Shown here: positions 14,531-34,600 of the stretch, one piece after another
Position numbering within the stretch: position 1 is the first letter of the stretch
How the letters are laid out: every line of letters begins with the position of its first letter
Assembly (NCBI RefSeq): GCF_947568905.1
Contig: NC_079168.1
Coordinates: 80,414,001-80,478,000, forward strand
DNA length: 64,000 nucleotides
Direction: 5' to 3'
DNA from: Ostrea edulis
Lineage: Eukaryota
Notes under the pieces: model-generated
What the model was told of the DNA's origin: nothing
The model's database searches: none
The model's input: only the letters and a program-made list of their open reading frames with translations
Position numbers and translations under genes: made by a program

Positions 14531-15540
14531 TACTCTTATAACGATAAACATGTAAATAAGCATACCATTCTTTAACAATGGACAGATATATTCTACACTC
14601 TATTTTAATGTCTCTGGCTGACATGGATTTTGTACAAGGGAATTATTAATGTGGTGTGTGTGTGGGGGGGGGGGGGGGGTACTCAGACCCCCCCCCCCCC
14701 CCCCCCCCCACTTTTATACAGCCATGTACTTCGTTTGGAAGATTTTATCCTATCTTGTTATACATGCATTATTCCGATAGGTGAATTTCATAGGGTCATG
14801 TAGCTAATAAAAAAATATACATATACATGTATAGACGTCGCGCACGCTGCTGGTGTCAAAAAGCATTACATATCACAACGGTAACATTTACACTGTTTTA
14901 TATGACTTTACGAAAGTTACACATCATTTTGGCGGTAATTTTACTTTCTATCCATTTCGATATCAATACTTCTTTAAAAATGCAAATTATTAAATGTATA
15001 AGGTTGAATATTCTTATATTTACGTAAATATTGCATGTAGACTGGTAACGAAAGTGTCACACATACATGATGTTTGTAACTTTCTTAAAACTATTTGCAT
15101 GATGATTAAGATTATAATATTAATAATTATGTACATGCATTCACCAATCAAGGGCCCTCAGGCGGCATACACCATTTCAACAATTAAACATTATAACTAC
15201 ATGATATATTACATACACTTGTATTCCACATACACACGATTTCTATATTGACATTGGTCTTAAATTGGCCCATAACAACACTGATTGAAAATGCACTGTA
15301 TAAAAAGGATGCTATATGGGTAGTAAAGTGAAACAAGATTATAAAATGTTGTTCTGAACACAAAGGGTACAAAGGGACGGTGCCACGGGCACTCCACGTT
15401 TTAAATATATACTATGTATAATAAAAAAAAATGTCTTCCTGTAAACATCATATTTACTGTTTTACAAGTAGACAATTTTTTATTATATAGGATATATTTA
15501 AAACGTCGAGTGTATGTGGACCGTGACTGTGCCAAGTCAA

Positions 15541-15760
15541 TTATAACGACCATAGAATTTGCGAAATGTTGTCTTTAAACGAGACTGTTGAAATCCTGCA
15601 ACATCAACTTGTTTGCCCGTAGCCTGCTTTGATTTGAAAATTTATCATACGCAAAACATGCTCTGGGAAATTGCTGCATAAATTTATATGAGGAGTTGAG
15701 GATGGAGAAGCTAAAGTAATCTCATTTGTCATAAAGTTGTGTTGTTAGTTTGTCGCCGAC
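15541..15760 (-). mobile_element. Second, more decayed Penelope-like RT-tail fragment (same family as 6211-6860)
   Basis: TTATAACGACCATAGAATTTGCGAAATG...GAGACTGTTGAAATCC...CATCAACTTGTTTG is shared with 6589-6664. The minus strand reads GDKLTTQLYDK*DYFSFSILN. Confidence 0.75.
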
Positions 15761-15806
15761 ATATCTGTTCATTAGTTGGATTAACTGGGTCAGTGCGCGT
15801 CTCGCC

Positions 15807-15925
15807 AGACATTGGTTAGTCTAGGCCACCTACACGTTTGTCAATGCAGTGTTCTACGAGACAAGTCAAACGGCTTGCGTGAGTGGGAAGTCAAACGGCT
15901 TGCGTGACCTAGGCTAGACATTGGT
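15807..15925 (+). promoter_or_regulatory. Candidate upstream regulatory module of HIF-alpha: two TTGCGTGA (XRE/HRE core) in a 20-bp direct repeat, one ACGTG core and two CCAAT boxes
   Basis: AAGTCAAACGGCTTGCGTGA at 15863-15882 and 15888-15907, CACGT at 15833-15837, and AGACATTGGT at 15807 and 15916. It is a CpG-rich island about 720 bp upstream of the ATG. Confidence 0.5.
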
Positions 15926-16531
15926 CAGCGCAGCAGATGTGACTTTAAAAAATAATTTCCACGAAAAAAGGCAGAACTGAATATTCCGGATAAATATATC
16001 TCTCTCTCTCCTTTTTTTTTTTTAAAAGACAAGCTTTATTTTAAGTAGGTGTGTCATAATCACAAAGTAACACAATCTCCAAATTGAGGAACTTTTAGAC
16101 CGACGAAAAATGGAACTTTTTAAAATGCTATAAATTGACAGTTTACAATGTTTTACTAAAATTATAGCGGGTATTATGTGAAGCAACAAATGAATTTAAT
16201 CAGGAAGATGGTATCAATCACAATATCTAGATATGTTGAAAAGTTTTATTTCTAAGCCTATATGATTGTAAAAAAAAATTATATGTCCTTTAAAAAGCTA
16301 GATTCTAGATGTCTCTAAAATAAATGTCTATATTTAAAAATATAAATCCGTTGAGCTCTCAGATTATTTTCTGCACCTTATGCATGAATGCATGAACTAA
16401 CATTATTTAATTTTTTATACTAGATGCATATTTTAGATGGTTTCATCTGTCCAAAATAAATACACAAGGTGAAGGTTACATCTCGAAGCGTTGAGAAAAC
16501 ACGAGTTAAGTCGCTTGAGCTATATCCGGTT

Positions 16532-16547
16532 TCATTCGCAGGAAGTG
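16532..16547 (+). promoter_or_regulatory. Candidate core promoter of exon 1a (Inr TCATTC plus ETS-type CAGGAAGTG)
   Basis: TCATTC at 16532-16537 and CAGGAAGTG at 16539-16547, about 95 nt before the ATG, in a locally CpG-rich stretch. No TATA box. Confidence 0.4.
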
Positions 16548-16630
16548 CACAAACAGAGACTCTATTGGTAAATATTTTTCAGACATTTTGTGAACTTTCA
16601 ACAGAAACAGAGAGTTTTAATTCTATCCTG

Positions 16631-16653
16631 ATGAGCTCGACTACAAAAAGAAG
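16631..16653 (+). CDS. HIF1A: HIF-alpha exon 1a coding part (MSSTTKR-R)
   Basis: ATG...AGAAG|GTAAGT is a consensus donor in phase 2. It joins exon 2 to give [17 protein letters not shown]. Confidence 0.85.
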
Positions 16654-19600
16654 GTAAGTGAACCTTTTACAGTTTCTTTCTGTAAATTTCGAGTTCGAAT
16701 TGAGAAAATGGCGAATGTAATTCACATCTGATCGACCATGTGTCAAATTTTTGTTGATAAGCTGTTGATGAGTGGGGGATATTTTGATGCAGAAAAAAGT
16801 AGTCATATTTGAGCTTTGTACGCTTTGCATGAAAGTAATTTCTCAGCAAGTAAACTTTTACAACTGGGTCGACCAATCCTACTCAGAAGCGATAATGAGG
16901 GTAGGAGGGAACCGATATGTCATCATTAATGAACATTATTAGATCTAGTTAACATTACCAACGCACAGATGAGAGTGTGGAAGTTTTATGTACAGAGAGA
17001 AATTAACATTTCTTTTCCCTCAGACTCTTTCCCAGATACCAATCATTTCTAAAATTAAGAAAAATATTATCAATTGTATACAAAGGAATACTTACCAAAA
17101 ATAATGCAGGGCCATCTGGTCAATTTGTTTATTATTATCAAAACTGGCTTATGGTTTGTGAAACCAGCGACAAAGGCATTCCTGATACATTGTCACACTC
17201 TCCGTATTGTTGTCACTTTCGTTAATTTTCATTACTTGTCTATAAAAGACTTTTTCATTATGAATAAATTAGCAACACTCCTTATTTGGTGTTGTCATTG
17301 CCATTGAATTTATATTATATTTTATTGTTGGTCATGTGTTTGAGCATTTCACAGATTTCAGAACTAAAATATTAACTCACATTTCTGGGAATATAACATT
17401 ATCGACTGAATTTTACTTTTGTAGGTGGGTTGGGGTGGTGATGGGATGAGAGTTAGTGTGAACGGTTTGTTGGGGGCCCTTTTGTGCCCCCATGATCAAT
17501 GATCCAATGGAGGGGAAGATGGTATGGGGATATTTTTGTGATCTGTGTGTTTCTCTGTCTCTCTGCATCTGAAAGACTCTAGGTTTTCATTTATGCTGAG
17601 CAGCTGGCAAATGAGTTGTCACTGTCACATGTGCTTGTGGATATGACTATATAATACCCCCCCCCAACACACACACACACCCTCTCTAAAATTTGTATTT
17701 AGTCTGAAGTTGATTTTTTGAGGTATATTAAAGCTGCAAAATGGCAATTTTTATACGTTTATTAGTGCAAATTTGTAGTAAACTGAGTAATTAAATGAAA
17801 ATGATTATGTTTATTCCATAACTTATTTGATTTGTAAAGAAATCGGGGGGGGGGGGGGGGGGGGGGGTACATGCAGGCACCATGATCTCGCAGTCGTGAA
17901 GCTTTTAACATGAGCCTTGTATTACTTGACATATACTACTATATGTGGAATGACTGTCATATTCCAAGGCACGATAATATATGACTGTGCAATTATGTAT
18001 ATGTTGGAAAATGTGTAGACATGTATAGTTTTGATTGAATAGGTACATTCATAGTCTTTGATATAGTAAAAACTGGCATGCTCAAAAATTTATAATTAAT
18101 TACTGGTGTGTAATATTACTTATAGGGTGGGGCAATAGATGACACATGTATACTTATAGGGTGGGGCAATAGATGACACATGTAATTATACTTACAGTTT
18201 GAGGCAATAGATGATGCATGTAATTACTTATAGGGTGGGGCAATAGAGGACACATGTAATTAATTATAGGGTGGGACAATAAATGACACATGTAATTATA
18301 CTTATAGTTTGAGGCAATAAATGACACATGTATACTTATAGGGTGGGGCAATAGATGATGCATGTAAATACTTATAGGGTGGGACAATACATGACACATG
18401 TAATTACTTATAGATTGAGGCAATAAATGACACCTGTATACTGATAGGGTGGGGCAATACATGACACATGTAATTATACTTATAGATTGAGGCAATAAAT
18501 GACACATGTATACTTATAGGGTGGGGCAATAAATGACACATGTAAATACTTATAGGGTGGGGCAATACATGACACATGTAATTACTTATAGGGTGGGGCA
18601 ATAAATGACACATGTAATTACTTATAGGGTGGGGCAATAAATGACACGTATACTTATAGGGTGGGGCAATAGATGATATATGTAATTACTTATAGGGTGG
18701 GGCAATAAATGACACATGTAATTACTTATAGGGTGGGGCAATAGATGACACATGTAATTACTTATAGGGTGGGGCAATAGATGACACATGTAATTACTTA
18801 TAGGGTGGGGCAATAGATGATATATGTAATTACTTATAGGGTGGGGCAATAGAGGACACATGTAATTACTTAGAGGGTGGGGCAATATATGATACCTGTA
18901 TACTTATAGGGTGGGGCAATAGATGACACATGTAATTACTTATAGGGTGGGGCAATAAATTATATATGTAATTACTTATAGGGTGGGGCAATAAATGACA
19001 CATGTATACTTATAGGGTGGGGCAATAGAGGACACATGTAATTACTTAGAGGGTGGGGCAATATATGATACCTGTATACTTATAGGGTGGGGCAATAGAT
19101 GACACATGTAATTACTTATAGGGTGGGGCAATAAATTATATATGTAATTACTTATAGGGTGGGGCAATAGATGATGCATGTAATTACTTATAGGGTGGGG
19201 CAATAGATGATGCATGTAAATACTTATAGGGTGGGGCAATAAATGACACATGTATATACTTATAGGGTGGGGCAATAGATGATGCATGTAATTAATACTT
19301 ATAGGGTGGGGCAATACATGACACATGTAATTATACTTATAGATTGAGGCAATAAATGACACATGTATACTTATAGGGTGGGGCAATAAATGACACATGT
19401 ATATACTTATAGGGTGGGGCAATAGATGACACATGTAATTAATACTTATAGGGTGGGGCAATACATGACACATGTAATTATACTTATAGATTGAGGCAAT
19501 AAATGACACATGTAATTACTTATAGGGTGGGGCAATAGATGACACATGTAATTACTTATAGGGTGGGGCAAAAGATGATATATGTAATTACTTATAGGGT

Positions 19601-22600
19601 GGGGCAATAGAGGACACATGTAATTACTTATAGGGTGGGGCAATAAATTATATATGTAATTACTTATAGGGTGGGGCAATAGATGACACATGTAATTACT
19701 TATAGGGTGGGGCAAAAGATGATATATGTAATTACTTATAGGGTGGGACAATAAATGACACATGTAATTATACTTATAGTTTGAGGCAATAAATGACACA
19801 TGTATACTTATAGGGTGGGGCAATAGATGATGCATGTAAATACTTATAGGGTGGGGCAATAAATGACACATGTAGTTATTTATAGGGTGGGGCAATAAAT
19901 GAAAATTACTAGTAGTGAGACAATGATACACAGACATATCTTTATACATTACATGTATCTCAATATTATAACAGATAATGGTAATGTAACAAATTGAACA
20001 ATAAATCAACAAAATGTAGTAAAAATTATTTTATCACATTTGCTGTGAAATTGATAATGTTGCCAAATTGCTGATTTATATGTACACGGTGCAATAAGAG
20101 GCATAACTACTGCACAACAAGAGATTAGATTATTTATGTGTGCAATGTGCAAAATGATGTAAATATCAGTGAATATGAAAAATAATATTAAGATTAAAAA
20201 CATTTTCCTTTAGGAGGACTATATTTTTAGTTACAAAAACAGATAGTTTTGTTATGTAGGTTAAGGTGACTGTTGACACGTATATTTAACATTACGTGAA
20301 TGAGGTCAGTCTTGTAGATCAGTGACCTAAATATTTATGTCAGTGAAAAATCATCAGATCGATGTGTAACTCAGTGGGATATTTACTGGCTGATTCAGGA
20401 AAGTCACTCTCTAAACAGATATATCTCTAGATTATTTAATGCATCAGTCTAGTTGCTGACATGATGGAAACTCCAGGGTAAAATGAGAGAGCCGGCCTTA
20501 TTTCTGAACCTTAAACCTCGAGGTATCTGATTTCCACTTAACCCTTCTTTATTCTATTTGCGCTCCGATTTGTTACACCCGAATTTGAGTGCCCTTGGAA
20601 AATTACGAGTTTTTTGGTGAGGTGAGACAGACGACAGACAGCAAATGACAGAAATTAGGCAAATTCTAATCTTGAGTGAGCTGTCCGTCAGAGTTGTTAT
20701 CACCAGGATAATTTGAGGTTGTTGTTTTTCAAAATCATTTGTTCTGTAGACTTGTATGGCTCATAAACACATGTACATGTATGTTGAACATTTAATGAAA
20801 TCTGATATTTGGAAAAATCCATACTCTGACACCGAAACACTTACTTATACTTATCCCTCCCACCCTACCTTTGTCATTTTTAAGTGCCAATAAAAAAGAC
20901 AGTTTATCTGTTTTTATAAGCTATAAAACAGATAAACTGTCTAAGCACATTGTTTTTCCAAAATATTTTGCTGTAAATTAAAGTTCTCAGAAGACTTGCA
21001 TTGCAGTCACCCTCCACAACCCCCGCCCCTCCTACCTTTCCAAGATAAACCTATTTACAATATATCTCCATAGGCATCTCCCGTCCCCCCCTTCTACCCA
21101 GTAAAGAAATTAATACAGAGCCAATAATTTCTCAAAAATATGTCACAACATTTATTAGTACATGTATCTCAAAAGTTGTTATCTCAAAAGCTTAATTGCA
21201 GAAAGAAGAAACTGACCATTCAGAATGTCTTATAAAGGTGATCGGTGGGGAGATCACATATTTTGAATATAAATTGTTGTTTCTTAGTAAATTTTATTTT
21301 TGCATTAGGTAGAGGGGGATGGTTATGTATGTAAGATCTATACATGCTATTGCTATCCACACTTTAGGTGCCTGTGTATACTTCATGAGAGCACCAGAGA
21401 TATATATATGACAGCTGTATTATATTAACAGTGAATCTTGGCTTGCCTGAATCACTGTCTCCGTTTGTTGAATTGATTACTGTGGATTCTAATTCTAACA
21501 GCCCATTTACTGCTGAAAAGTCTCGTAAATTGATTTTTCAGGTGAATGTTGTATTAAGATGGCAATTAATTACTTAAAAGCCTTTAATGATGGAAAGTTG
21601 CGCTGTTGGTTGCGGTTTTATCTATCCATGTCTGTCACTGATGCGTCATTCCCTAACTAAGGACTGGGACTCGGTAGTCTTTACAAGTCAGTTAACATGG
21701 CAGCACATTCTTAATTGCCTCCAAACACGAAGGGAGTCAATATATTTATTAATGGACATCTCACCTCATCTATCAGCAAAAGCAGTTGTTCTTACACCTT
21801 AATACATATGTTACTGCACTATTTGGTTAATTTTTTGTTTTTGGTACAACACCCCCCCCCCCCCTCTTTCCGATACACACAAACACCCCAAAAATAGCTC
21901 ATCTTTGAGATAGTTTTGGTGGTTACAATGTGTATGATAATTGATTTGATTTTAGCATAAATTAATGGTAACTATGGTAACTAGAATCATTTCCAGTCAT
22001 GGTTCCTGTTTGCTAAGAGGACATCAAATAAATTCAAAACATTTCCATCCATCCCCATTATTTAATGATTAAAATGTATAAAAAGACAGAAGTACCTCGG
22101 ACTTTTGCATTGAGATACGAAGAAAGTTTATGTTCTATTTGTTGATGTGTAATGATATTGTGCCCTATTATTTGCCAAATATGAATTTTTGAAATGCAAA
22201 GGAAAAATATTAAATGTATTGTGATCATTGAATTTGTGTGTTTGGCAATATTCAGTGGGTATCATCTGTGTTTAGTACATGGTTCCCATCAAATGCTTTG
22301 TTGTCCGTATTTTAATGTTTGAGCTAGGTTTCAAAGGTTTTATGATAATGGACAAGGAAGGTGTCCATGGATCAAATTAGTTTTGGAGATGTTATCAATT
22401 ATTGCTACAGAGAATGAATTCTGTTGTTTTAACCCTAAAGATGTTTAAACATCACATCACCGAGAGTGGAATCATTACAAACAGGAAGTGATCAGGTACC
22501 AAACAAAATGTTAACCCTTCCTGTTACACACCTCATAGAATAACTCACCAGGTACCAAGGAATGCTGGCTTCCTGGTACGCATCGAGAGTGTCATGTGAA

Positions 22601-25600
22601 TTTCATGGAGGTGGATGTGTTTTTCCAATTAGTATATACGCACTTCACAAAATTAACTCACCAGGTACAGAAGAATGTGTACATTTCCAGTTACACACCT
22701 CACAAAATACCTCTGTCACCAAGTACCAAAAAATTCTAACTTCCTGTTACAGACCTCACAAAATGACCCACCAGGTACTAAAATATTCTGACTGCCTGTT
22801 ACAGACCTCACAAAATACCTCACCAAGTACCAAAAAATTCTAACTTCCTGTTACAGACCTCACAAAATAACTCACCAAGTACCTAAAAATTGTGACACTT
22901 TATGTCATTACACACCTTGGTGATTTTTGCATCAGCTGTTGCATTTGGTGATCAAGCAAGCACTTTCGTAAGAATTGTAAACTTTAAAAAAAACACCAAT
23001 CATCTCTCATAATTATGCACTTTGGCTTTAAAGAATATTTATTAAACTTTCTTAAGACTCTAGCCCACAAATTGAACACATTAATTAAAGCTGGTCTCAT
23101 TTTAGTCAGCTTAACTGAATAGCAGGTTTTGCTTGAAATAATAACTGCAGGACTGAACACAGTATGTGGGATAAATCCATAGCTCTCTGGAAAAAAAATG
23201 AAACAGACCGCTATACAGATCCAGTACCCCTTATAAAAACCTTCTATTGAAGACACAAACCTTCTATTTATGACATAAACCTATTTACGACAGTTTTACA
23301 GATCCACCCCTTATAAAAAAGTTAACCTTTGATTTACGGTGCAGTTTTACAGATCCACCCCTTATAAAAACCTAGTTATGGTGCTGTTTTACAGATCCAC
23401 CCCATATAAAAACCTTCCATTTACAGCACAGTTTTTTAGAGTTGAGGTTTTAATTATTGGTGTAATCTTGCACTGACATCTTAAAATTTTGATATGAAAG
23501 AATTCCCGATGTATTTTCCCACTACACTTGACACTTTTGTTCCATTCATATCTTCAAGCATTCACTACAGCCCCACGTGAACCAAAAACTAACAGCTTCA
23601 AATAATTTTGTTTGCATGTTGACATAACCATATTAGGTTACCAGTGGATTAAAATCCATTACATTATTGTGTATTTTTTCATAATTCCAATGCTAGGTTA
23701 AATTCCGTCTTCATTTAAATGTGAAGTAAGCTATCTAATTTGTTAGAAGACATTTTAATATAATGCTGTGTTTGATTTGTGTTGTGGTGACACCAATAGT
23801 TTCTGCAAATAAATGAAAAGTATATTTTGAGTGCATAAAGGTCAAGTTTAACACAGTCATTATGACATATGCTTTTCTTTCCAAAGGAATTGACTATACC
23901 ACAAAACTCAGGGTTTTAAGTCAAGTTTCTTGTGCATCAGTTTCAGTAATGTTAAACATGTATGAGAAAATTAGGCTTGTGAGCTCTGTAGTCTAGTCTC
24001 TGTAAGACTCAGCACACCTTCATGATGACATGGTACAAGTTAATCAGCCAATCAAAATCTGCCTGGTATCGGTCTGGTGAGTCTTCTACCAGAAGCTGAA
24101 TGTGGTTTATTTGTGAATACAATGTGTTGTTAAACGGGACAAGAGCATTAAAGTACACTGCCCTGTTGATTTGTAGATGGTGAAGGAAAAATCCACTTCC
24201 CTTTGCAAGAAGAGGCACAAAATATATTTGTTAATATACAGAGTTTTAAACAGGGCTTACTGGTTATTTACTATAACGAGAAACTTAATAGATGTCATTT
24301 CCATATTTAACACTGAAATAGATATTGTGATAGGTTTCTTATTAGCATTTTTAATGGCAGTTCTGCATGACTGAATTTCGGTCAAGAATGTTGTTTATTG
24401 CACAAATAAGTGCATCTGTCGTGTTTGTTTGATCCGGTACGCGACCTTCATTGCGACATAGCAGACTTGTTTTGCCATCTGCGTGGGGACTGGCCTTGAA
24501 TTGGGGGTAGTAATGATCTCTTGGTCTGATACATCGGCATACAGCTACAATATAGCTGAATGAATGAAATCAGTCCATGATCAGTGATCAGGAACTGCAA
24601 AAACACAATCAGTGCCTGTCTCGGGGAGGACTTGAAATGGATCAGTATCCCCAAAACACTGCCAAAAAAATCTCCCAGACCAGACGAGACCATTGTAATG
24701 CTGGTTTCGGAAGGTACAAAAAAATATCCCGGGGTCGAGGCCAAAATAGGCATTGATTTACAGCGCTGGGTTTTTTTGGTGATAAATAGAAATAATTAAC
24801 CCCCTCAAAGTTTGATATCATGCACTGATAAAAATGTTTTATTGTACAGTTCTTTTGCAAAGATAGTGAGCAAGAAGGATAACAGAAGGTTCAAACAATG
24901 TTGTGGGAAAAGATTTTTTGTTGGGGGGGGGGGGGGGGGGTCATGAACCTTTTAGAGCAGTAAAGACTTAAAATTTTGAAATATATACATAGTTATACTA
25001 CATTGTAAGTCATGATGCTTTAGTCTGCCCTGTTTCAAAGAACACATTCAACAGTTAAAAGAGAGCATATAATGGCTATTTCAAAAAATTACATTACTAT
25101 AACTGTCATTACCATGGTAACATGTACAGCCCGGGACTGTCATGACGAGGGTAATTGTTAAGCTGGCATATCATGCAGCCTCATGCAATGACCAGTCAGG
25201 TAACAAAATCAGGTGATTTTAACTTAAATCTAAGGTGTTTTGGTGACCATGGTTACAAGGATTCAACCATGTCATTAGGTAGTATAAATCATAGATCTGT
25301 TGCTCTGATCATTTAGAAATTACAAAAAAAATGTCAGATTTTTTTTGTAGATGCTGTACATGTATGTACAGTGAGTGCATGATCTGATATATAAAACATT
25401 TATTTCAAATGTCATGCTAGTTACTGTTTTATATATATACATAATAATGTATATTATATATTCAGAGAGAAAGAAACATATGCTTGATTTCTAATCAAAA
25501 TTGTCCCACATTTAACTTATTGGTTGAAAAAAAAGCACAATCTTATTCTTTTTTTCATGACTTATCATAAGGAGTAACAAAATACCAATTGCATTTTTTT

Positions 25601-28600
25601 TTTGTATACTGCGGTATATAGAATTTTAAAACAAAGGGGGAAATTCTTTAGTGAGCTCACAGAAAGAATTGGACTTGGAGTACAAATAGGAGAATTGATG
25701 TTATCTGACTTAGCCCCTGTGTGTGGTCAATCAAATCTCTCCAGGTCTCAATTTCATGAATATTAGAAGGAAAGAAATAGGAAAAAATGAAGGGGATGTA
25801 CATGTTTATTCACAAAGATAATATTTTGCTGTGTCATTGGTAACACCTACCACTGGGCTAGAATCCCTTCCAGAACAATGGGGAGCACGTAGGTCAAATT
25901 ACTGAAACTGAGAAGAGTGACCACTGGTCTGGACACTCTGAGTATGAATCCCTCCCAGAACAACAGGGACTAAGTCAGTTACTGAAACTGAGAAGAGTGA
26001 CGCAGCCTGCAGTAGGTGTAGATTGTGTTAGCACCATTAATTAGTGTGTATTGGAGATCAAACTTCAGATAACCAATACTGGCTAAGACAGGGAGTCAGC
26101 TGATCTCCTCGTGCCGCGGGTGTAAATTATTTCATAAGTATAAAGTCAGTCTAACATCAGGCTCGGAATAAAATTTTCTCTCTGTGTGGAACTGATATCC
26201 CATATGCCATACAAGTAAGTTATACAGAGACAAAACTTCACAGAAAAAGTGAATTTCGGCTGATTCCTATTTGGAATTACTTAATTTAAGTTGTTTTGTT
26301 TTTTCTTTTCTGAAGAAATGATTTGACATTATTCATCCTGGTTAACTTGGTTTTATCTTTTGAAAGCTAATTTCCCTTTCAAAAATAAATTACCTGAATT
26401 GATGAAAAATGATAATTTAAAGATGGATGAAAAAGGATAAATTAATTTCTGATAAAATGAATTTATTGTAACTTGATTAAGGAGACTGGATTTGGTTTGT
26501 ACTGATGCAGTTTTGATGTCAATTTTACAATTCTATAATGAGTACAATTTTCAGCGCACATTTGAAGATGTTATAGTTCAGTAACTGTTATAAAATCTGC
26601 TGTGATTATTTACTCTTTGTTTTACTGTTACACAACAGAACATTGATGAAGTACCTGATTTTATGTTGTGTGGTTGTTATACATCTGAAGGTTTGGTATA
26701 CATCTGTTGTGCAGTTTTCCCACGGTGGGGACCTAAGATTTAGCTTGAGGTACCTTATTAGGAACACATACTTAACGTGAAGGTTTAACCAATAACGTTA
26801 TACCCACACAAATGCAGTTAGGAAAAGTCTGTCAGAATAAGAACAATTCATGCAGTATATTGATGAAAAACATTTTTTAGCATTGGTCATGAATGTGTAT
26901 TAGATTTACAGACCCAAATCAAACACAAAGTATCACACTCTTGTGTTCAATTTAAAAACAATGTTGAAGAGAGGGTGCAAGATGAAATGAAACCACTTAA
27001 AGGGTTTTATACAAATTCCTTTAATATGTATGAAACAATTAAGTTCTAGCTTTATTATTCACTCGAATTTCAAACATCATCTCAATTTAGTTGTAGGATA
27101 ATATTAACTGCAAATCAATTGTTTCTGAGAAGCACAGGCCCAATGTACGGTACTTGTGAGTGTAATATTTTACAAAACAAAACTAAGTTTTACTGGCCAT
27201 GATCTTGGAGCCATTGTGTAATTTCAAAGACATAATTTTCATTTAATTTCTATATCAGACATGTCATAAACTTGGACCAATTTGTTTGGTTCTCTCTTCT
27301 CAAAGGTTTTGGACAGATCGAGTGTTTGGTTGTGTATAGTATACACATGTACATGGAAGTCTGTGTTGTGCATGATAAAGTTTTTAACAAATATACTGTG
27401 CATTTGCAGTAGATATATTCTAGCTGTAAAAGTTTTAAGGGTTATAAATCCATCAATTTGACACTTATGCAGTAAAAATAACTATATGCATAGATTTTTC
27501 ATGATATGGAAATTTAATTTAAAAAGGGATAAAAATAAATTTAATATTGCTTGAAAATTTTAAACTATATATAAAATGAAATATATCACATTTTTGAATG
27601 ATACTTATTGGGAGAATGTCCATAATAGAATATGCTTCAGATATAACATAATTATCAAAAATTTACTGCAATATATCTTTAACTGGGAATATAAGTATCA
27701 TTGAATGACTTTAAAATACTTTTGATATTCCTGTAATGAAGATATTTTTAAAAAGTAATATTTAATTTACTGGGTTTATTAACAGTGTGATAAATATTAA
27801 TGCAGGTGTGTAAATAACAAAATTCTCTGAAGATTCTAAAAATTTGACAAACACATTAATTAATGCTAATTTATAGGTAAGGATTCTGACAGATAAATTA
27901 ATGCCTCAGATAAAATTTTCTTCCTTATTACAATGTAGAAATTTAAACAATTGCAATACTGAAAGAACCTTTCACAAAGATGATTGCTATTGTAAGTTAT
28001 ATTGGACCCTGGAAGGAAGGGGGGGGGGGGGGGTGTTTCCCTCAGAATTACTATGTACTCCCCAATAGATGAGGGGAATTTGTAGTGAATGAGGCATGAG
28101 TAGGGGAACCAAATATTTACTGGTTCTCAGGACAGGAAATTTGCGAATTTGACCCCATTAATTAAGGACCCAACCTGTAACTAATAATTAGTCCTGAGGC
28201 TGTTTATAACATTTACTTATAAGGTTTGTTTCAATTACCTTTTGCTTTTTATATGTTGTTTTGTGTTTGGATCATTATGATGATGTGTAAATTTCAGGAA
28301 GTATCTTTGCCTCTTTTGTATTTTCGTATGGATAATTGCTCTTCATGTCTGAGCACAACTAATTCCGACTTCATATTAACACTAGTCAACATTTTCCAGT
28401 GCAGAAATGATTTAATATAGGAAATGAAGCATTGAAACAAGTTTTCATAATTGATAAGTTTCATTGATTCTGTATGCTGCACTTCTTAGGTTGAGGCGGA
28501 AGAAATGACAAACAGTTCATGAAAGATGATGCTGAAGTTCAATAAAATATGATTTAGAGAATTTGTAATCTTTCCCTGTGCACTGGTGGCTGAGATTTGA

Positions 28601-31600
28601 ATAACTCTATTATAAATGAATTTATATAACAATTGCTAGCCCATTCTTACGTAAGGCGGAATAACACACCAGAGAAAGCTGTTATGAATGGAAAGTGGAG
28701 GATATGTACAATAGATGAATTTACCTTATTTGGTTCTAAAAATGCAGTTTTAGCAGAATGTATTAATCTGGGGAAAAAAAATTTAAACCCCTGCTAGACT
28801 CGAACGGATGAACTACAGATCAGCAGCCGACACATTAACTTCTAGGCGATTAGATTTAAAAGCAATATAAATTTGTATTGCTGGTATTTATTTTTCTCAA
28901 AGGGCAGTCGATCAGCCATTATGACAAATTGAATGTATTATTCCTCCATAAATGGCTTCCTGACATTTTTTTTAATCACTTAGACACATTGTGAGTTTGA
29001 TTGTGCTCTTAATATATGAACTCTCTTTTGTTGCCCACCATTCTTAGTATGGATCGCTCATAATATAAAAATCTAGTTCAAAGTGATGGATTTTTCCACT
29101 CATAAGAGTTTTTATAACCTATTTAAGTTCTAAATTCTTCTACTTAATGTTTCTGTAAAGCATGAAATAAATTCACAGGATAGAGTTGATAAAATTGTTG
29201 TTTTATTTTTGTAATTGGTAATATACATGTATGTTAACAAAATTTCAAATCTTAGTGGAATTAATTCAAAGATTTTAATAAAGATTTTAATAATTGTATA
29301 TAAAATTTTACCCCAAAAAACCAACAAAATAAACCTAGACAATTTAACCTGCATATCAATTTAATCTACTCTGTCACAGTGAGATTATTATTCATAATGG
29401 TTGCTCTCTGTTTCATTTGTGAGTTCTAATACTCTGTAACTTTGAATTAAGACACTTGATTTTCTTTGGTTCTAAATTAATCTTTTTGCATGTTGTAGGG
29501 GGCTTCAATTCCGGCATTTGAGTCGATAATAAGAGACCTAGAGTGCAGTCAGATTATATTTCAGCCATATCCTCCTGTACTTCAACACCAGAATTAACTT
29601 TCACACCCCTTTCACATGTGGTGCAATTAAAAACTCTTTTTTACTGTTAAGAAATATTTCAATGTTTAATACTTTTTGTTTTTTTTAAAAGGCAAATCAT
29701 TCCTTGTTGGGTGGCTCCTGTGTTGCCATGGCAATGGATAAAGCAGGGTTAAAAGCATGACTGCCCCCTGATTTTGACAAGTCTGTCGGAATCAGAAAGA
29801 TAATGATGTAACTCATAAAGTGTAACTTGCGTTATTGCATACTAAGTAAACAATCTTTTTTTTGTTCATCCATTTTGTTTGTAACTTTTTCTTAATTTTT
29901 CACACTCCTGCCCATGTTTGTTTGAAAACCTTAAAACCCTTATGATTTTCAGTATTGTAGAGTCAAATACCCTTGTCTCTTTTAAAATGATTGTTATCGT
30001 TTTTAACATTAATGTCCTAATTTACTGTGTCCTTCACTTGTTTCTTTTGAAAAATATTCTTTTCAATCAGACAGATCTAAATAAAATAAAAAGGGTACAG
30101 AAATAGCAGGAGAAATCTATATTTATTGGAGGACAGACGCAGGAAACTTTTATAAGCGTAGTTGCGGTTAGAGTCCGGAACTCGATACTTGACCTGTGGT
30201 GTATATAACGAATGACCTCGCTGAGAGATACAGGGACTGCGGACACGGTATACTAATGAGGAGCTTTGCTACTGTGTGTAGAGTATTAGTATTCAATGTA
30301 TAGTCACTGAGTGTGGTCTATGTCTAATGGGCCAGCATCAGGTTTAACTGCGTATAAATCTCTCAGCGAATGTTGAATGGCAAGCTTGCAGTCTCATGCA
30401 GTTCTTTGTATTGCCATTTTTTGATATGTACCCTTTAAACTTGCACAAAAGAGCAAATCAATTTCTCTTATACAATGTAAGATTGAAATTTACTGTGGAT
30501 TATATGTATGTATTCATCTTTTAAAAAATTCGAAATGTAACAAGAATTACATGTATTTGGATATCCACATAATATACCAGATTCGGTTTGTTCTGAACTA
30601 AACTGGTTCATGTTTTCTCAAACATTATTTATCATTTTTTATGTAAATCATTCAATATGATGTAACTCATTTAAAGTTGGACATTCTTAATGCAAGAATA
30701 AGAGCATATTTTAGCCTTGTGTTTATGTTTACAAACAAACTAATGAAATGTTAATTATCCTAATTTTGCACGGACACAAAATTAATTTAACTTGATTTTA
30801 AATGGCACATTTTAATTAAGAATACTTGAGATGTGATATATATCATAAACTGCAATCGATAACCGTGCATTTTCAAAATTTTGTGAACAATAATATACCT
30901 CAATCTTTGTTTACACAACAAATAATAAACTCTAATGAGCTTCAATCATAATGTATAATAATAATTTTTTTTATGAAACCTTTAAAACAAAGTAGACAGT
31001 ATAAGATTTCGTTCATTTAAAAAGTAAAAAACAAAATTTGGGGGAAAATCGTGAATCGGTCCCTTGAACAGTTATAGTACGATTATGGTGTTTATATTGT
31101 GTTTGTTGAATTTTTGCTATTTGAAAACTTGCAATAATATCAGGGTTTGTAAATGTTATGGAACTTTAATAAATATTTTTATATTATGGTACTAGGTATT
31201 TATGTTTGAATTTGAAGTTAATGAGAGATCTGTGTATTGAGGTCTTGCCTGTTATTTTTACGGTACGAAATTCTATATTTATAGGAATTCGGAGAAGAGG
31301 AAGGAGAAGTCTCGAGATGCAGCTCGATGTCGACGCGGCAGGGAGACGGAGATTTTCTCTGAACTGGCTGATCAGATCCCACAATACATTGGCAGTCACG
31401 GTCAGTTGGACAAGGCGTCCATAATGAGGCTGGCCATCAGCTATCTAAAGATCAGCAAAATCATGGAAACGCAACGGAACAATAGTAAGTTTCCTCAGAG
31501 TCAGTCTGCTATCTACAGATTAGTAAAATCATGGAACAGTAAGTTTTCTCAGAGTCAGTTTGCTATCTACAGATTAGTAAAATCATGGAACAGTAAGTTT

Positions 31601-34600
31601 TCTCAGAGTACCAACAAGCATCAGTACAGCCTGATTGTTGCAGACATTTATCGTCCTGAACGATGTAATATAATAAAGACGGAACATGTGCATGTGAAAC
31701 TATGGCTTTTTGCGTTTGTATGTCTGTGATTGGGGTTCTAAGTGATTAACGATGAATTATTGAGTTAGTAATTAAAAATGTGTATTACAGTGTTTTATTA
31801 GCCATTGTTGTACTTGCAGGACATGCTCCATGTGAGGAATTCGATACGCTGTACAGCAAGGCCCTGGATGGATTTATCGCCATTCTGTCTAATGAAGGGG
31901 ATCTCGTCTACATCTCGGAGAGCGTTTCCAAGTACCTGGGTATTCAACAGGTGAGAACTTATACCCTGCAGGTCAAAGGTCAAGGTTATGCCATTGTTAA
32001 TCCTTATAAGAAAATTGCTTGCTTGAAATGATCAAATAGTCTCTCACCTTTCTCTCTTTCTCCTTCTGCAAATTTGCAATAGTATCATTGGTGTACATTG
32101 ATTTTGTGATGACCACTTATTTCCCATACACTGTCATTTGTCTTTTAAATAAATGGTTTGTAGGTGAGTTATTTCCCTAGTCCTACAAATGGCAGACAGC
32201 TCAGTTAATAGCTAATACTCGGGTGGAAAAATAACTTTCAAATGGTAAAAACTTCTTTCAGACAGTGCACTAAGCGACATCTTTTTCACATCATTTGCAT
32301 TTGATGTCATATTTGTTTCAGGTCACACTTTATCCTCACATGATTGAATTCAATTTCATGCTGTGGACATAAAAAATATTCCTGAAAATGATTACAGCTT
32401 TCACATGAAAAACATTTGCTCTTCTTATCTTATCTTAAACTACAATACTTTAAGAACCTCCAGAATTAGATGCTATTTGTTTTCATTTAGTTTTACAAAT
32501 TATTGGGTAGTGCCTTACAAATGTAAAGTTTTTCGATTTGTCATTACTTTCCGAGTTAGTGAGTTGTATTGGTGATTAAAACAGAACCTAAAATAGATTT
32601 CATGCTGTAATTTTGTGTAATGGGATATTCAAAAAATCTGCAAGTCATTATGAATGGATAAAGTTAAACCAAATCAATCCAAATCACAAGGTCATTGGCT
32701 GATTGGGTGAACTGGTCGTCTTCAAGAGAACCAGTTTATTTCAGTTGACATGACTTCTGTGTGTCCTATATGTTTAAAATGGACAAATAAGTATTTGTTT
32801 AAAATGAACCAGCAGTTCTAAGTTTTATTATCTTTAGGTCAAAAGCCTGATCATTTGTAATCAAACACGGATATATGTTCAAAGGGTGTGAACTATAAAT
32901 CTTCTCTTAATTGTCTTGCAGCACCCCAAAGTGTTTATAATTACTCCCTTATCATACGGTTTACATTCGTGTGGGTCCAGTTGTTTATTTCTTGACTTGA
33001 TTTTTTTTTTATTATTAGGAAAGTACATTTTAATGAACATTTTAAAAACAGCAATACAATTTATAGAGTTAGTTCCCTTGTGTGAATTTTGTTCTTTGGA
33101 TTGGATCTCTGAAATTCCTTTTTAAATAAGTATATCCAAAAAAATCATTTATTGTGGTTTAAAGATAGGAAGATTACACATGTGCATTGGATATCTGAGT
33201 ATGAGTCAATGGATTGGTATCAGGACAACTCGCCCCCAAGACAACTCGCCCTCAAGACAACTCGCCCCCTCCTTGGGACAACTCACCCTCTCTCAGGACA
33301 ACTCTCACTCTCTCTTTGCAATTATTATTTTTGGTCTAAATCCAAGAGTTTTATTAGCGAAAATAGATAAAATTGTAGATGAAATATACATCACAGACAA
33401 AAAGACATGTATAAACACCGAACTTTGTGTCTTTTTATGCAAGACGAAAGATCTAATTTTCACAAGGCGTGAAAATCCAGTGTTTGGGTCCAGTAAATTC
33501 ATTATCAATTTTATGTAAAATATATACTTATACATGTAACAGGAAGAAGCTAGGTTTTGGTAGGGAGTGAATAAGCTTGATGCTTCAGCTGGCGTGTAGA
33601 ATTAATTATCAGTAATCTACTTCTGTTGTTCTTAAAAATTTAATTGCTTGATTTCCCCAAAGCTGATATATATTTTAAGGTAAAAATAATCAATAAAACA
33701 AATCCATTATGATAAAAATTCTTGAATGGAAATTTTATGATTTTTCAACAAGAATTAGTTGAGAAACGTATTTAAAGATAATTACATGTATCAGAATATT
33801 CACACTTCACTTCACAATTATTCTTATGTAGTATACATATCGTATTGATCAATACAACCACCACCCCTAAAAATAAAAGATTCAAACTTTTCTTAATATT
33901 ACACACACATACACACACTAATCTACACACACACAAAATAGGATTATAGTGTGATGATATATTTATATATAATATTGGGGGCGAGTTGTCTCAAGAGAGG
34001 GGGCGAGTTGTCCTGATAGAGGGCAAGTTGTCCAGCATTCGATGGATTCTGTCAAGATTGGGGAGGGGGGGTCTCTTTAATGTAAATTGCTTGAGATCTA
34101 AGTTGAAAGCTGATGAAGTCTTTGTTGTTCGTAGGTGAGAAATGAGCTACTAGGTCCTGCCATGTTTTTGTCATGCAAGCATGGTATTAACTTCCGACTT
34201 TCTAAGGGTTTTCCAATTTATTTGTAGGATTAATCAATAAATTGCATGGACTCCCGACCTTGTAAATTTGCAACACTCTCTTTATCATTATGAATACATC
34301 AAGAAACTTTCCTTGGTATACTACTGATATTGATTAATTTCATTGTGGTTTTCAAGTTTCCTGGAAAATTTTCCTAAAGTTCAACTCTACTGGTAGTTAT
34401 TTTCGGACATGGGCCTCATGCACCGACTATAACTTATATTTTCAAATTATACTCAGGAATCATTAAACTGTAAATTGCTTTTTTATTTTTAAGAACATTA
34501 TTTGCATGTTATTTCACAAGAATAACCATTTACAAAAATTTAGTTCTCAATAATAAACTCTTACATGTAGCCATGGATATAGATGTTTTATGCAATAAAC

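Follow-up and report, generated by a model that had tools for sequence, protein, structure and literature searches.

Evidence for two conserved alternative first exons in the HIF-alpha gene of the flat oyster Ostrea edulis

We analyzed a 64,000-nt stretch of the Ostrea edulis genome (NC_079168.1, 80,414,001 to 80,478,000, forward strand), here called the window, which carries the canonical HIF-alpha gene of the flat oyster. HIF-alpha is the master regulator of the response to hypoxia, and oysters are models of hypoxia tolerance. An initial annotation of the window had proposed a multi-promoter gene in which four alternative first exons, 1a, 1b, 1c, and 1d, change the residues just before the basic DNA-binding region, with or without a basic KRR patch. 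We find it very likely that evolution has fixed at least two alternative first exons in this gene, 1a and 1d, both spliced in phase 2 to the exon 2 acceptor at position 31285. For these two exons, the proposal is borne out by conservation, annotated isoform pairs, and spliced RNA from Crassostrea; for 1b and 1c, it is not. That O. edulis itself uses exon 1d is a prediction from sequence. The coordinates of all features are collected in Table 1, and a slash marks an exon boundary throughout.

The four ATG-initiated mini-frames and their phase-2 donors exist exactly as first described, and all four join the exon 2 acceptor in frame. Since the region from 16000 to 31284 holds 210 ATG-initiated open frames that end at a phase-2 GT, about one per 73 nt, this pattern alone is not above chance. 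When the 210 frames were ranked by a simple donor score, exon 1a came 1st and exon 1d 4th, with 1b at 18th and 1c at 26th. An initiator-like motif, TCAKTC, had been noted upstream of three of the proposed exons. This motif occurs 30 times in the window and 8 times in the region upstream of exon 2, about once per 2.1 kb, which is its background density. It adds no independent support for 1b or 1c, because frames are so common that almost any copy of the motif precedes one. Only 1a and 1d rise above chance, and they do so through conservation and not through the frame pattern.

Three blocks of intron 1 are conserved in the loci of Crassostrea angulata, C. virginica, and Saccostrea cucullata (24349 to 24500, 26012 to 26220, and 29441 to 29772), and the second of these comprises exon 1d and its leader. 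Among the orthologues compared (those three oysters and Pecten maximus), the exon reads ATG CCR TAY AA/GTRAGT in the oysters, with CCN as the second codon when P. maximus is included, and all of the changes are synonymous. The CCAAT, CAGCTG, and TATAAAG motifs upstream of 1d are invariant among the oysters. The putative 192-nt leader is free of ATG triplets, of which we estimate that about 3 to 4 would be expected by chance. The ratio of observed to expected CpG (CpG o/e) is 0.3 to 0.46 around 1d and 0.47 over the whole window. P. maximus has the same order of exon 1a (3001), MPYK exon (15906), and exon 2 (18138) and the same phase, and its leader is no longer alignable.

Protein records show how widely the short start is used. 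Both MSS..KRR and MPYK forms are listed for C. angulata, Magallana gigas, C. virginica, S. cucullata, and S. echinata, the MPYK/NSEKRK start being that of C. angulata X2 (XP_052698051), M. gigas A0A8W8IE78, C. virginica X3 (XP_022331132), S. cucullata X2, and S. echinata X2. In eight further molluscs (Pecten, Mizuhopecten, Ylistrum, Mya, Biomphalaria, Physella, Gigantopelta, and Babylonia), ...K(R/K)(R/K) versus MPY(K/R) is all that distinguishes the paired RefSeq isoforms X1 and X2. The HIF proteins of Sinanodonta, Mactra, Elysia, the chiton Leptochiton, the aplacophoran Spathoderma, and Phoronis psammophila also begin with MPY(K/R). In the RefSeq pairs of C. angulata (XP_052698050/XP_052698051), C. 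virginica (XP_022331130/XP_022331132), and P. maximus (XP_033733953/XP_033733955), the N termini are the same as those encoded in the window, the rest of each pair is identical, and the exon order and phase-2 junction are shared with the O. edulis locus. Unlike in those species, only the KRR form is annotated in O. edulis, where the MPYK exon occurs in the DNA but in none of the listed products.

Spliced RNA from Crassostrea supports exon 1d directly. Among Logan RNA contigs, eight from different runs code for the MPYK protein. Their initial stretch, of up to 212 nt, is colinear with the C. angulata genome (14705 to 14916 of locus L001), and the contigs then continue into exon 2 (18298) and exon 3. 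The bases before L001 14705 are gtgtgtg and not an AG acceptor. The colinearity of the contigs and the lack of an upstream acceptor indicate that 1d, with its leader of about 200 nt, is truly a first exon, and on the same grounds we ruled out that 1d is a cassette exon fed from 1a. Both 1a and 1d are colinear with the genome to the 5' end of the Crassostrea contigs, and the contigs join 1a, 1d, or a third exon encoding MTTQV... to one exon 2 position, in frame and in a mutually exclusive manner. The frames of 1a, 1d, and a further candidate, 1e (see below), are all phase 2 in the window. One M. gigas-type RNA contig encodes a lineage-specific start, MTTQVIVKSDSDDPRNG. The start site for 1d initially placed at 26147 is not supported by the Crassostrea contigs, whose 5' ends lie as much as 200 nt upstream of the ATG; the TCAGTC at 26146 is not conserved, and the contigs begin upstream of the matching position.

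Exon 1a lies in CpG-rich sequence (CpG o/e of about 1 across 15500 to 16750). A block from 16481 to 16761 is kept in three other oysters, with an invariant stretch that ends in CAGGAAGTG. Taken to 16790, the conserved block straddles the start of intron 1 and comprises exon 1a, its leader, and a downstream element that contains AAAATGGCG, which we take to be YY1-like. The place that matches this downstream element in C. gigas/angulata is the start of one RNA contig (L013) for a further alternative first exon; the contig is colinear with L001 10104 to 10333 and is then spliced onto exon 2. Lineage-specific extra first exons lie 280 to 420 nt downstream of the 1a ATG in Crassostrea, encoding MTTQV...RNG in C. 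gigas/angulata and MSTLW in C. virginica (10420 of locus L003).

The start MSS(N/T/S)(T/S)KRR/NSEKRK is found in M. gigas (NP_001292266/BAG85183), C. angulata X1, C. virginica, two Saccostrea species, and O. edulis, and a 1a-type start is also present in Pecten and in gastropods. The ...KRR/NSEKRK junction extends to annelids, hemichordates, and arthropods, with MSSTTKEKRR as a hemichordate example. Judged by these starts, exon 1a is the canonical, pan-bilaterian first exon. The KRR patch aligns to the KKR of vertebrate HIF-2alpha and, by this alignment, has its homologue in the KKR/KKK patch of vertebrate HIF-alpha.

These features suggest how the two exons would work. Exon 1a, behind a probable CpG-rich promoter of the housekeeping type, provides the canonical start, with a KRR patch that extends the basic region. 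Exon 1d, 9.6 kb downstream in CpG-poor sequence with CCAAT, E-box, and TATA-like motifs, would give a protein that is four residues shorter and lacks the patch. CpG content and motifs would fit two promoter types, housekeeping at 1a and more restricted at 1d, and separate promoters would allow separate regulation. With two first exons at two promoters, promoter choice would set both the timing of transcription and which N terminus precedes the DNA-binding region. The two products differ only in MSSTTKRR versus MPYK, and the MPYK form would be without the basic patch that lengthens the basic region and the N-terminal nuclear localization cluster. The solved HIF-1alpha chain 4zpr_B, which we take to belong to a complex of HIF-1alpha, ARNT, and hypoxia response element DNA, begins past the KRR-equivalent patch. 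If 4zpr is such a complex, the patch would be dispensable for core DNA binding, and the difference between the 1a and 1d proteins is likely modulatory.

That a four-residue N terminus is so strictly conserved across molluscs and in a phoronid suggests a role for the residues ahead of the basic region; we found no statement to this effect in the literature searched. The MPY(K/R) peptide is invariant across phyla despite synonymous variation, which argues that the peptide itself is selected. A broader proposal, which we regard as unlikely but worth stating, is that the MPY(K/R) exon belongs to a second promoter module of HIF-alpha, older than 500 million years and shared among lophotrochozoans (bivalves, gastropods, a chiton, an aplacophoran, and Phoronis), that encodes a selected peptide and a functionally distinct proteoform. 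As a general rule of N-terminal processing, removal of the initiator methionine before proline leaves a free N-terminal proline, which escapes acetylation and can be read by the Pro/N-degron machinery. The MPYK form would probably expose such a proline, although this is speculative. If the broader proposal is true, the MPYK form would have altered DNA affinity, nuclear import, or oxygen-independent turnover. HIF-alpha of the tick Ornithodoros turicata (P0162/P0443) has a RefSeq X1/X2 pair distinguished solely by a long ...KERR start in one and a four-residue MTVR start in the other. The MTVR start may mark a short alternative first exon of independent or of shared origin, and it could hint that the arrangement is older still.

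The assignment of the window to canonical HIF-alpha comes from the O. edulis HIF-1alpha-like protein XP_048735208.2 (695 aa; P0387), which maps exon by exon onto positions 16631 to 55206 and has bHLH_HIF1A, PAS, and HIF-1 domains (Pfam). This match, together with the HIF domains, identifies the window as the flat-oyster canonical HIF-alpha locus. The bHLH_HIF1A domain (PF23171) covers residues 3 to 69 (E = 4e-21), the PAS, PAS_3, and PAS_11 matches exceed their cut-offs, and the HIF-1 match (PF11413) is borderline, at 26.4 bits against a cut-off of 27. The protein has the HIF-type bHLH, two PAS domains, and the oxygen-dependent degradation motif of HIF-alpha (bHLH-PAS class I), the last of these being the borderline PF11413 match, and its best matches in the PDB are HIF-2alpha and HIF-1alpha.

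A search of cluster representatives with exon 2 led to M. gigas HIF-1alpha (697 aa; P0121), which shares 94% identity with the window in exon 2. The related proteins fall into three oyster clusters, one of which holds XP_048735208.2. The M. gigas protein groups with NP_001292266/BAG85183, and its identity to the Saccostrea representative is 85%; the O. edulis and Saccostrea HIF-1alpha-like proteins share one 90%-identity cluster. Synteny is shared as well, and the C. angulata and S. cucullata loci both have an arginase gene downstream. The O. edulis protein has about 695 aa and a bHLH from residue 9, versus 888 aa for the paralogue HIFalpha-like, and the gene is orthologous to canonical oyster HIF-alpha and not to HIFalpha-like.

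A candidate absent from the initial list, exon 1e, may be a third first exon. A gene with three promoters, 1a, 1d, and 1e, is a serious possibility, although we lean somewhat against it. Exon 1e lies inside the conserved block 29441 to 29772, about 1.5 kb upstream of exon 2, where CpG o/e is 0.66 to 0.8. Its ATG, 20-nt length, and GT are retained in all four oysters, a TCATTC lies 31 nt upstream, and its C. virginica orthologue is the annotated first exon of XP_022331131.1, which encodes MAMDKTR (L003 16885). However, its donor, GTTAAA, is weak and ranks 60th of the 210 frames. Every substitution in the frame is nonsynonymous and conservation extends about 17 nt beyond the donor, a pattern more in keeping with a DNA element than with a coding exon. 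The ATG also lies within a near-perfect 14-nt palindrome, GTTGCCATGGCAAT (29722 to 29735), which is kept in all four oysters, has the version GTTACCATGGTAAC in Saccostrea, and presumably resembles an RFX X-box. The C. virginica MAMDKTR isoform is missing from the newer-assembly products and from the called-gene record, and no RNA contig with 1e was seen. The C. virginica MPYK protein and the X2 proteins of Pecten and Biomphalaria are likewise absent from called-gene records. For an M. gigas partial protein starting with SG, there is one candidate donor about 130 nt past the 1e block in C. angulata; it was too weak and was not used.

Several results weigh against the use of 1a and 1d as two first exons in O. 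edulis. RefSeq gives one O. edulis isoform, in an entry without an isoform label, and the 1a form is therefore the only one annotated in this species. A run search with a 10-kb, mostly intronic stretch returned four DNA-like runs and no RNA run, word searches with exon 2 and with residues 1 to 200 of the O. edulis protein gave no oyster transcript fragments, and the proteins collected included none derived from an O. edulis transcript. The Crassostrea 1d contigs begin upstream of the TATA-like motif, and the promoter types described above are predicted from composition and motifs. A functional difference between the 1a and 1d proteins is likewise a prediction. The single RefSeq isoform and the searches that yielded no O. 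edulis RNA would fit a gene that uses 1a only, with 1d kept in O. edulis as a regulatory element or a recently silenced exon. We consider this improbable. The O. edulis 1d ATG, three codons, phase, and consensus donor are intact, the only differences from the other oysters are synonymous, and the leader has remained free of ATG triplets; every other mollusc examined that has isoform annotation uses the MPYK exon.

The least probable arrangement is the full set of four first exons, for which one can cite that all four frames and donors exist, that a TCAKTC lies 7 to 99 nt upstream of each frame, that CpG o/e rises slightly near 20250 and at 24000 to 24500, that 1c adjoins a conserved block, and that Crassostrea has lineage-specific extra first exons (MTTQV...RNG, MSTLW, and MAMDKTR), but which fails on the number of equivalent chance frames, the low donor ranks of 1b and 1c, and the comparison with other species. 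Whereas 1a and 1d are conserved in relatives and annotated there, and 1e is conserved too, 1b and 1c are not. Exon 1b has no counterpart at any of the three oyster loci (C. angulata, C. virginica, and S. cucullata), not even when words of 7 bases are compared, and sits in sequence that cannot be aligned between species, about 560 nt downstream of a 1.8-kb satellite (36 bp x 50). At the position of the 1c ATG, both Crassostrea species read CACAGTC and Saccostrea has a 14-nt insertion; the 1c donor aligns to a GT in no species, and indels that are not multiples of 3 break the frame. No annotated oyster protein starts with MMETPG or MISDQ. It is very unlikely that either exon is used in O. edulis, and sequence comparison makes chance frames the most likely explanation for both. 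The satellite itself (18115 to 19902, in intron 1) has about 50 copies of its 36-bp unit with 86% matches and a CpG o/e near 0, and it yields several chance ATG-to-GT frames.

Exon 1c lies at the edge of the conserved block 24349 to 24685, in which no compared species has an annotated exon. The invariant core of its stronger part, 24349 to 24500, is roughly GGTCAAGAATGTTGTTTAT ... GCACA ... AAGTGCAT, with motifs that we take to be forkhead- and C/EBP-like. This part is probably regulatory, and an enhancer is the probable form. An Rfam search of intron 1, covering 16000 to 25400 and 25500 to 32000, gave no match.

Table 1. Positions in the window of the first exons, exon 2, and associated features of O. 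edulis HIF-alpha
Feature	Position	Strand	Details
Exon 1a promoter/5' untranslated region	15500..16630	+	CpG o/e about 1; conservation from 16481
Exon 1a coding part	16631..16653	+	MSSTTKR + AG of split Arg codon; donor AG/GTAAGT at 16654; start of XP_048735208.2
Conserved block after exon 1a donor	16706..16790	+	contains AAAATGGCG; alignment
Exon 1b (MMETP/G), probably chance frame	20461..20477	+	MMETP + GG; donor GG/GTAAAA at 20478
Conserved non-coding block, intron 1	24349..24500 (weaker to 24685)	.	kept in C. angulata, C. virginica, S. cucullata
Exon 1c (45 codons), probably chance frame	24577..24713	+	MISDQ...; + AG; donor AG/GTACAA at 24714
Putative exon 1d 5' untranslated region, perhaps with core promoter elements	26012..26203	+	conservation; Crassostrea RNA colinearity
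Exon 1d coding part	26204..26214	+	MPY + AA of split Lys codon; donor AA/GTAAGT at 26215
Candidate exon 1e (MAMDKA/G)	29728..29747	+	ATG GCA ATG GAT AAA GCA GG; split Gly codon; weak donor GTTAAA
Exon 2, common acceptor exon	31285..31484	+	acceptor tatag/G; basic region + helix-loop-helix; PF23171

The use of exons 1a and 1d resembles known HIF systems in part. Mouse HIF-1alpha has two differently regulated promoters that feed a common exon 2, and the I.1 protein lacks 12 residues (PMC13760070). Like oyster exon 1d, mouse I.1 gives a product without N-terminal residues before the basic region. However, I.1 is non-coding, with translation from a Met in exon 2, whereas 1d has its own ATG and four-residue peptide, and homology of the two systems is not established. 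Human HIF-1alpha is multi-promoter, too. Human HIF3A has several alternative first exons and N-terminal variants (PMC13760070), but unlike the oyster gene it is a vertebrate paralogue with far larger N-terminal differences and additional 3' splicing.

In oysters, the initial annotation had mentioned reports of 5' isoforms of HIF-alpha. Such isoforms do exist, for a paralogue and not for canonical HIF-alpha: Crassostrea gigas CgHIFalpha-like has four 5' isoforms identified by rapid amplification of cDNA ends, which are tissue specific and hypoxia responsive (Wang et al. 2016, PMC5096685). Like oyster HIF-alpha, it is an oyster bHLH-PAS hypoxia factor with alternative 5' untranslated regions and start codons, but it has 888 aa and a bHLH at residues 38 to 91, and canonical CgHIFalpha appears only as a control in that study (PMC5096685). 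We found no report in the literature searched of first-exon isoforms of canonical oyster HIF-alpha. The canonical pair in molluscs is known as RefSeq annotation, the O. edulis case is an annotation gap, and the moderately new point is the breadth of conservation of the MPYK exon. In most oyster work, HIF-alpha is measured with primers or antibodies that do not tell the two forms apart. If the MPYK form has a separately regulated promoter, isoform-specific expression work would be needed in O. edulis and other bivalves. A second isoform should also be added to the O. edulis annotation.

Two minor observations concern the rest of the gene. C. angulata X3 (626 aa) and C. virginica X4 (624 aa), proteins P0362 and P0378, fall short of the main forms by about 70 residues and keep the 1a start; they are presumably internal exon-skipping isoforms. 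In the window, CpG o/e climbs to 0.8 to 1.1 around exon 2 (30750 to 31500), matching the 1a promoter, with the remainder of intron 1 strongly depleted of CpG. This rise could mark an unmethylated island or an extra internal start region.

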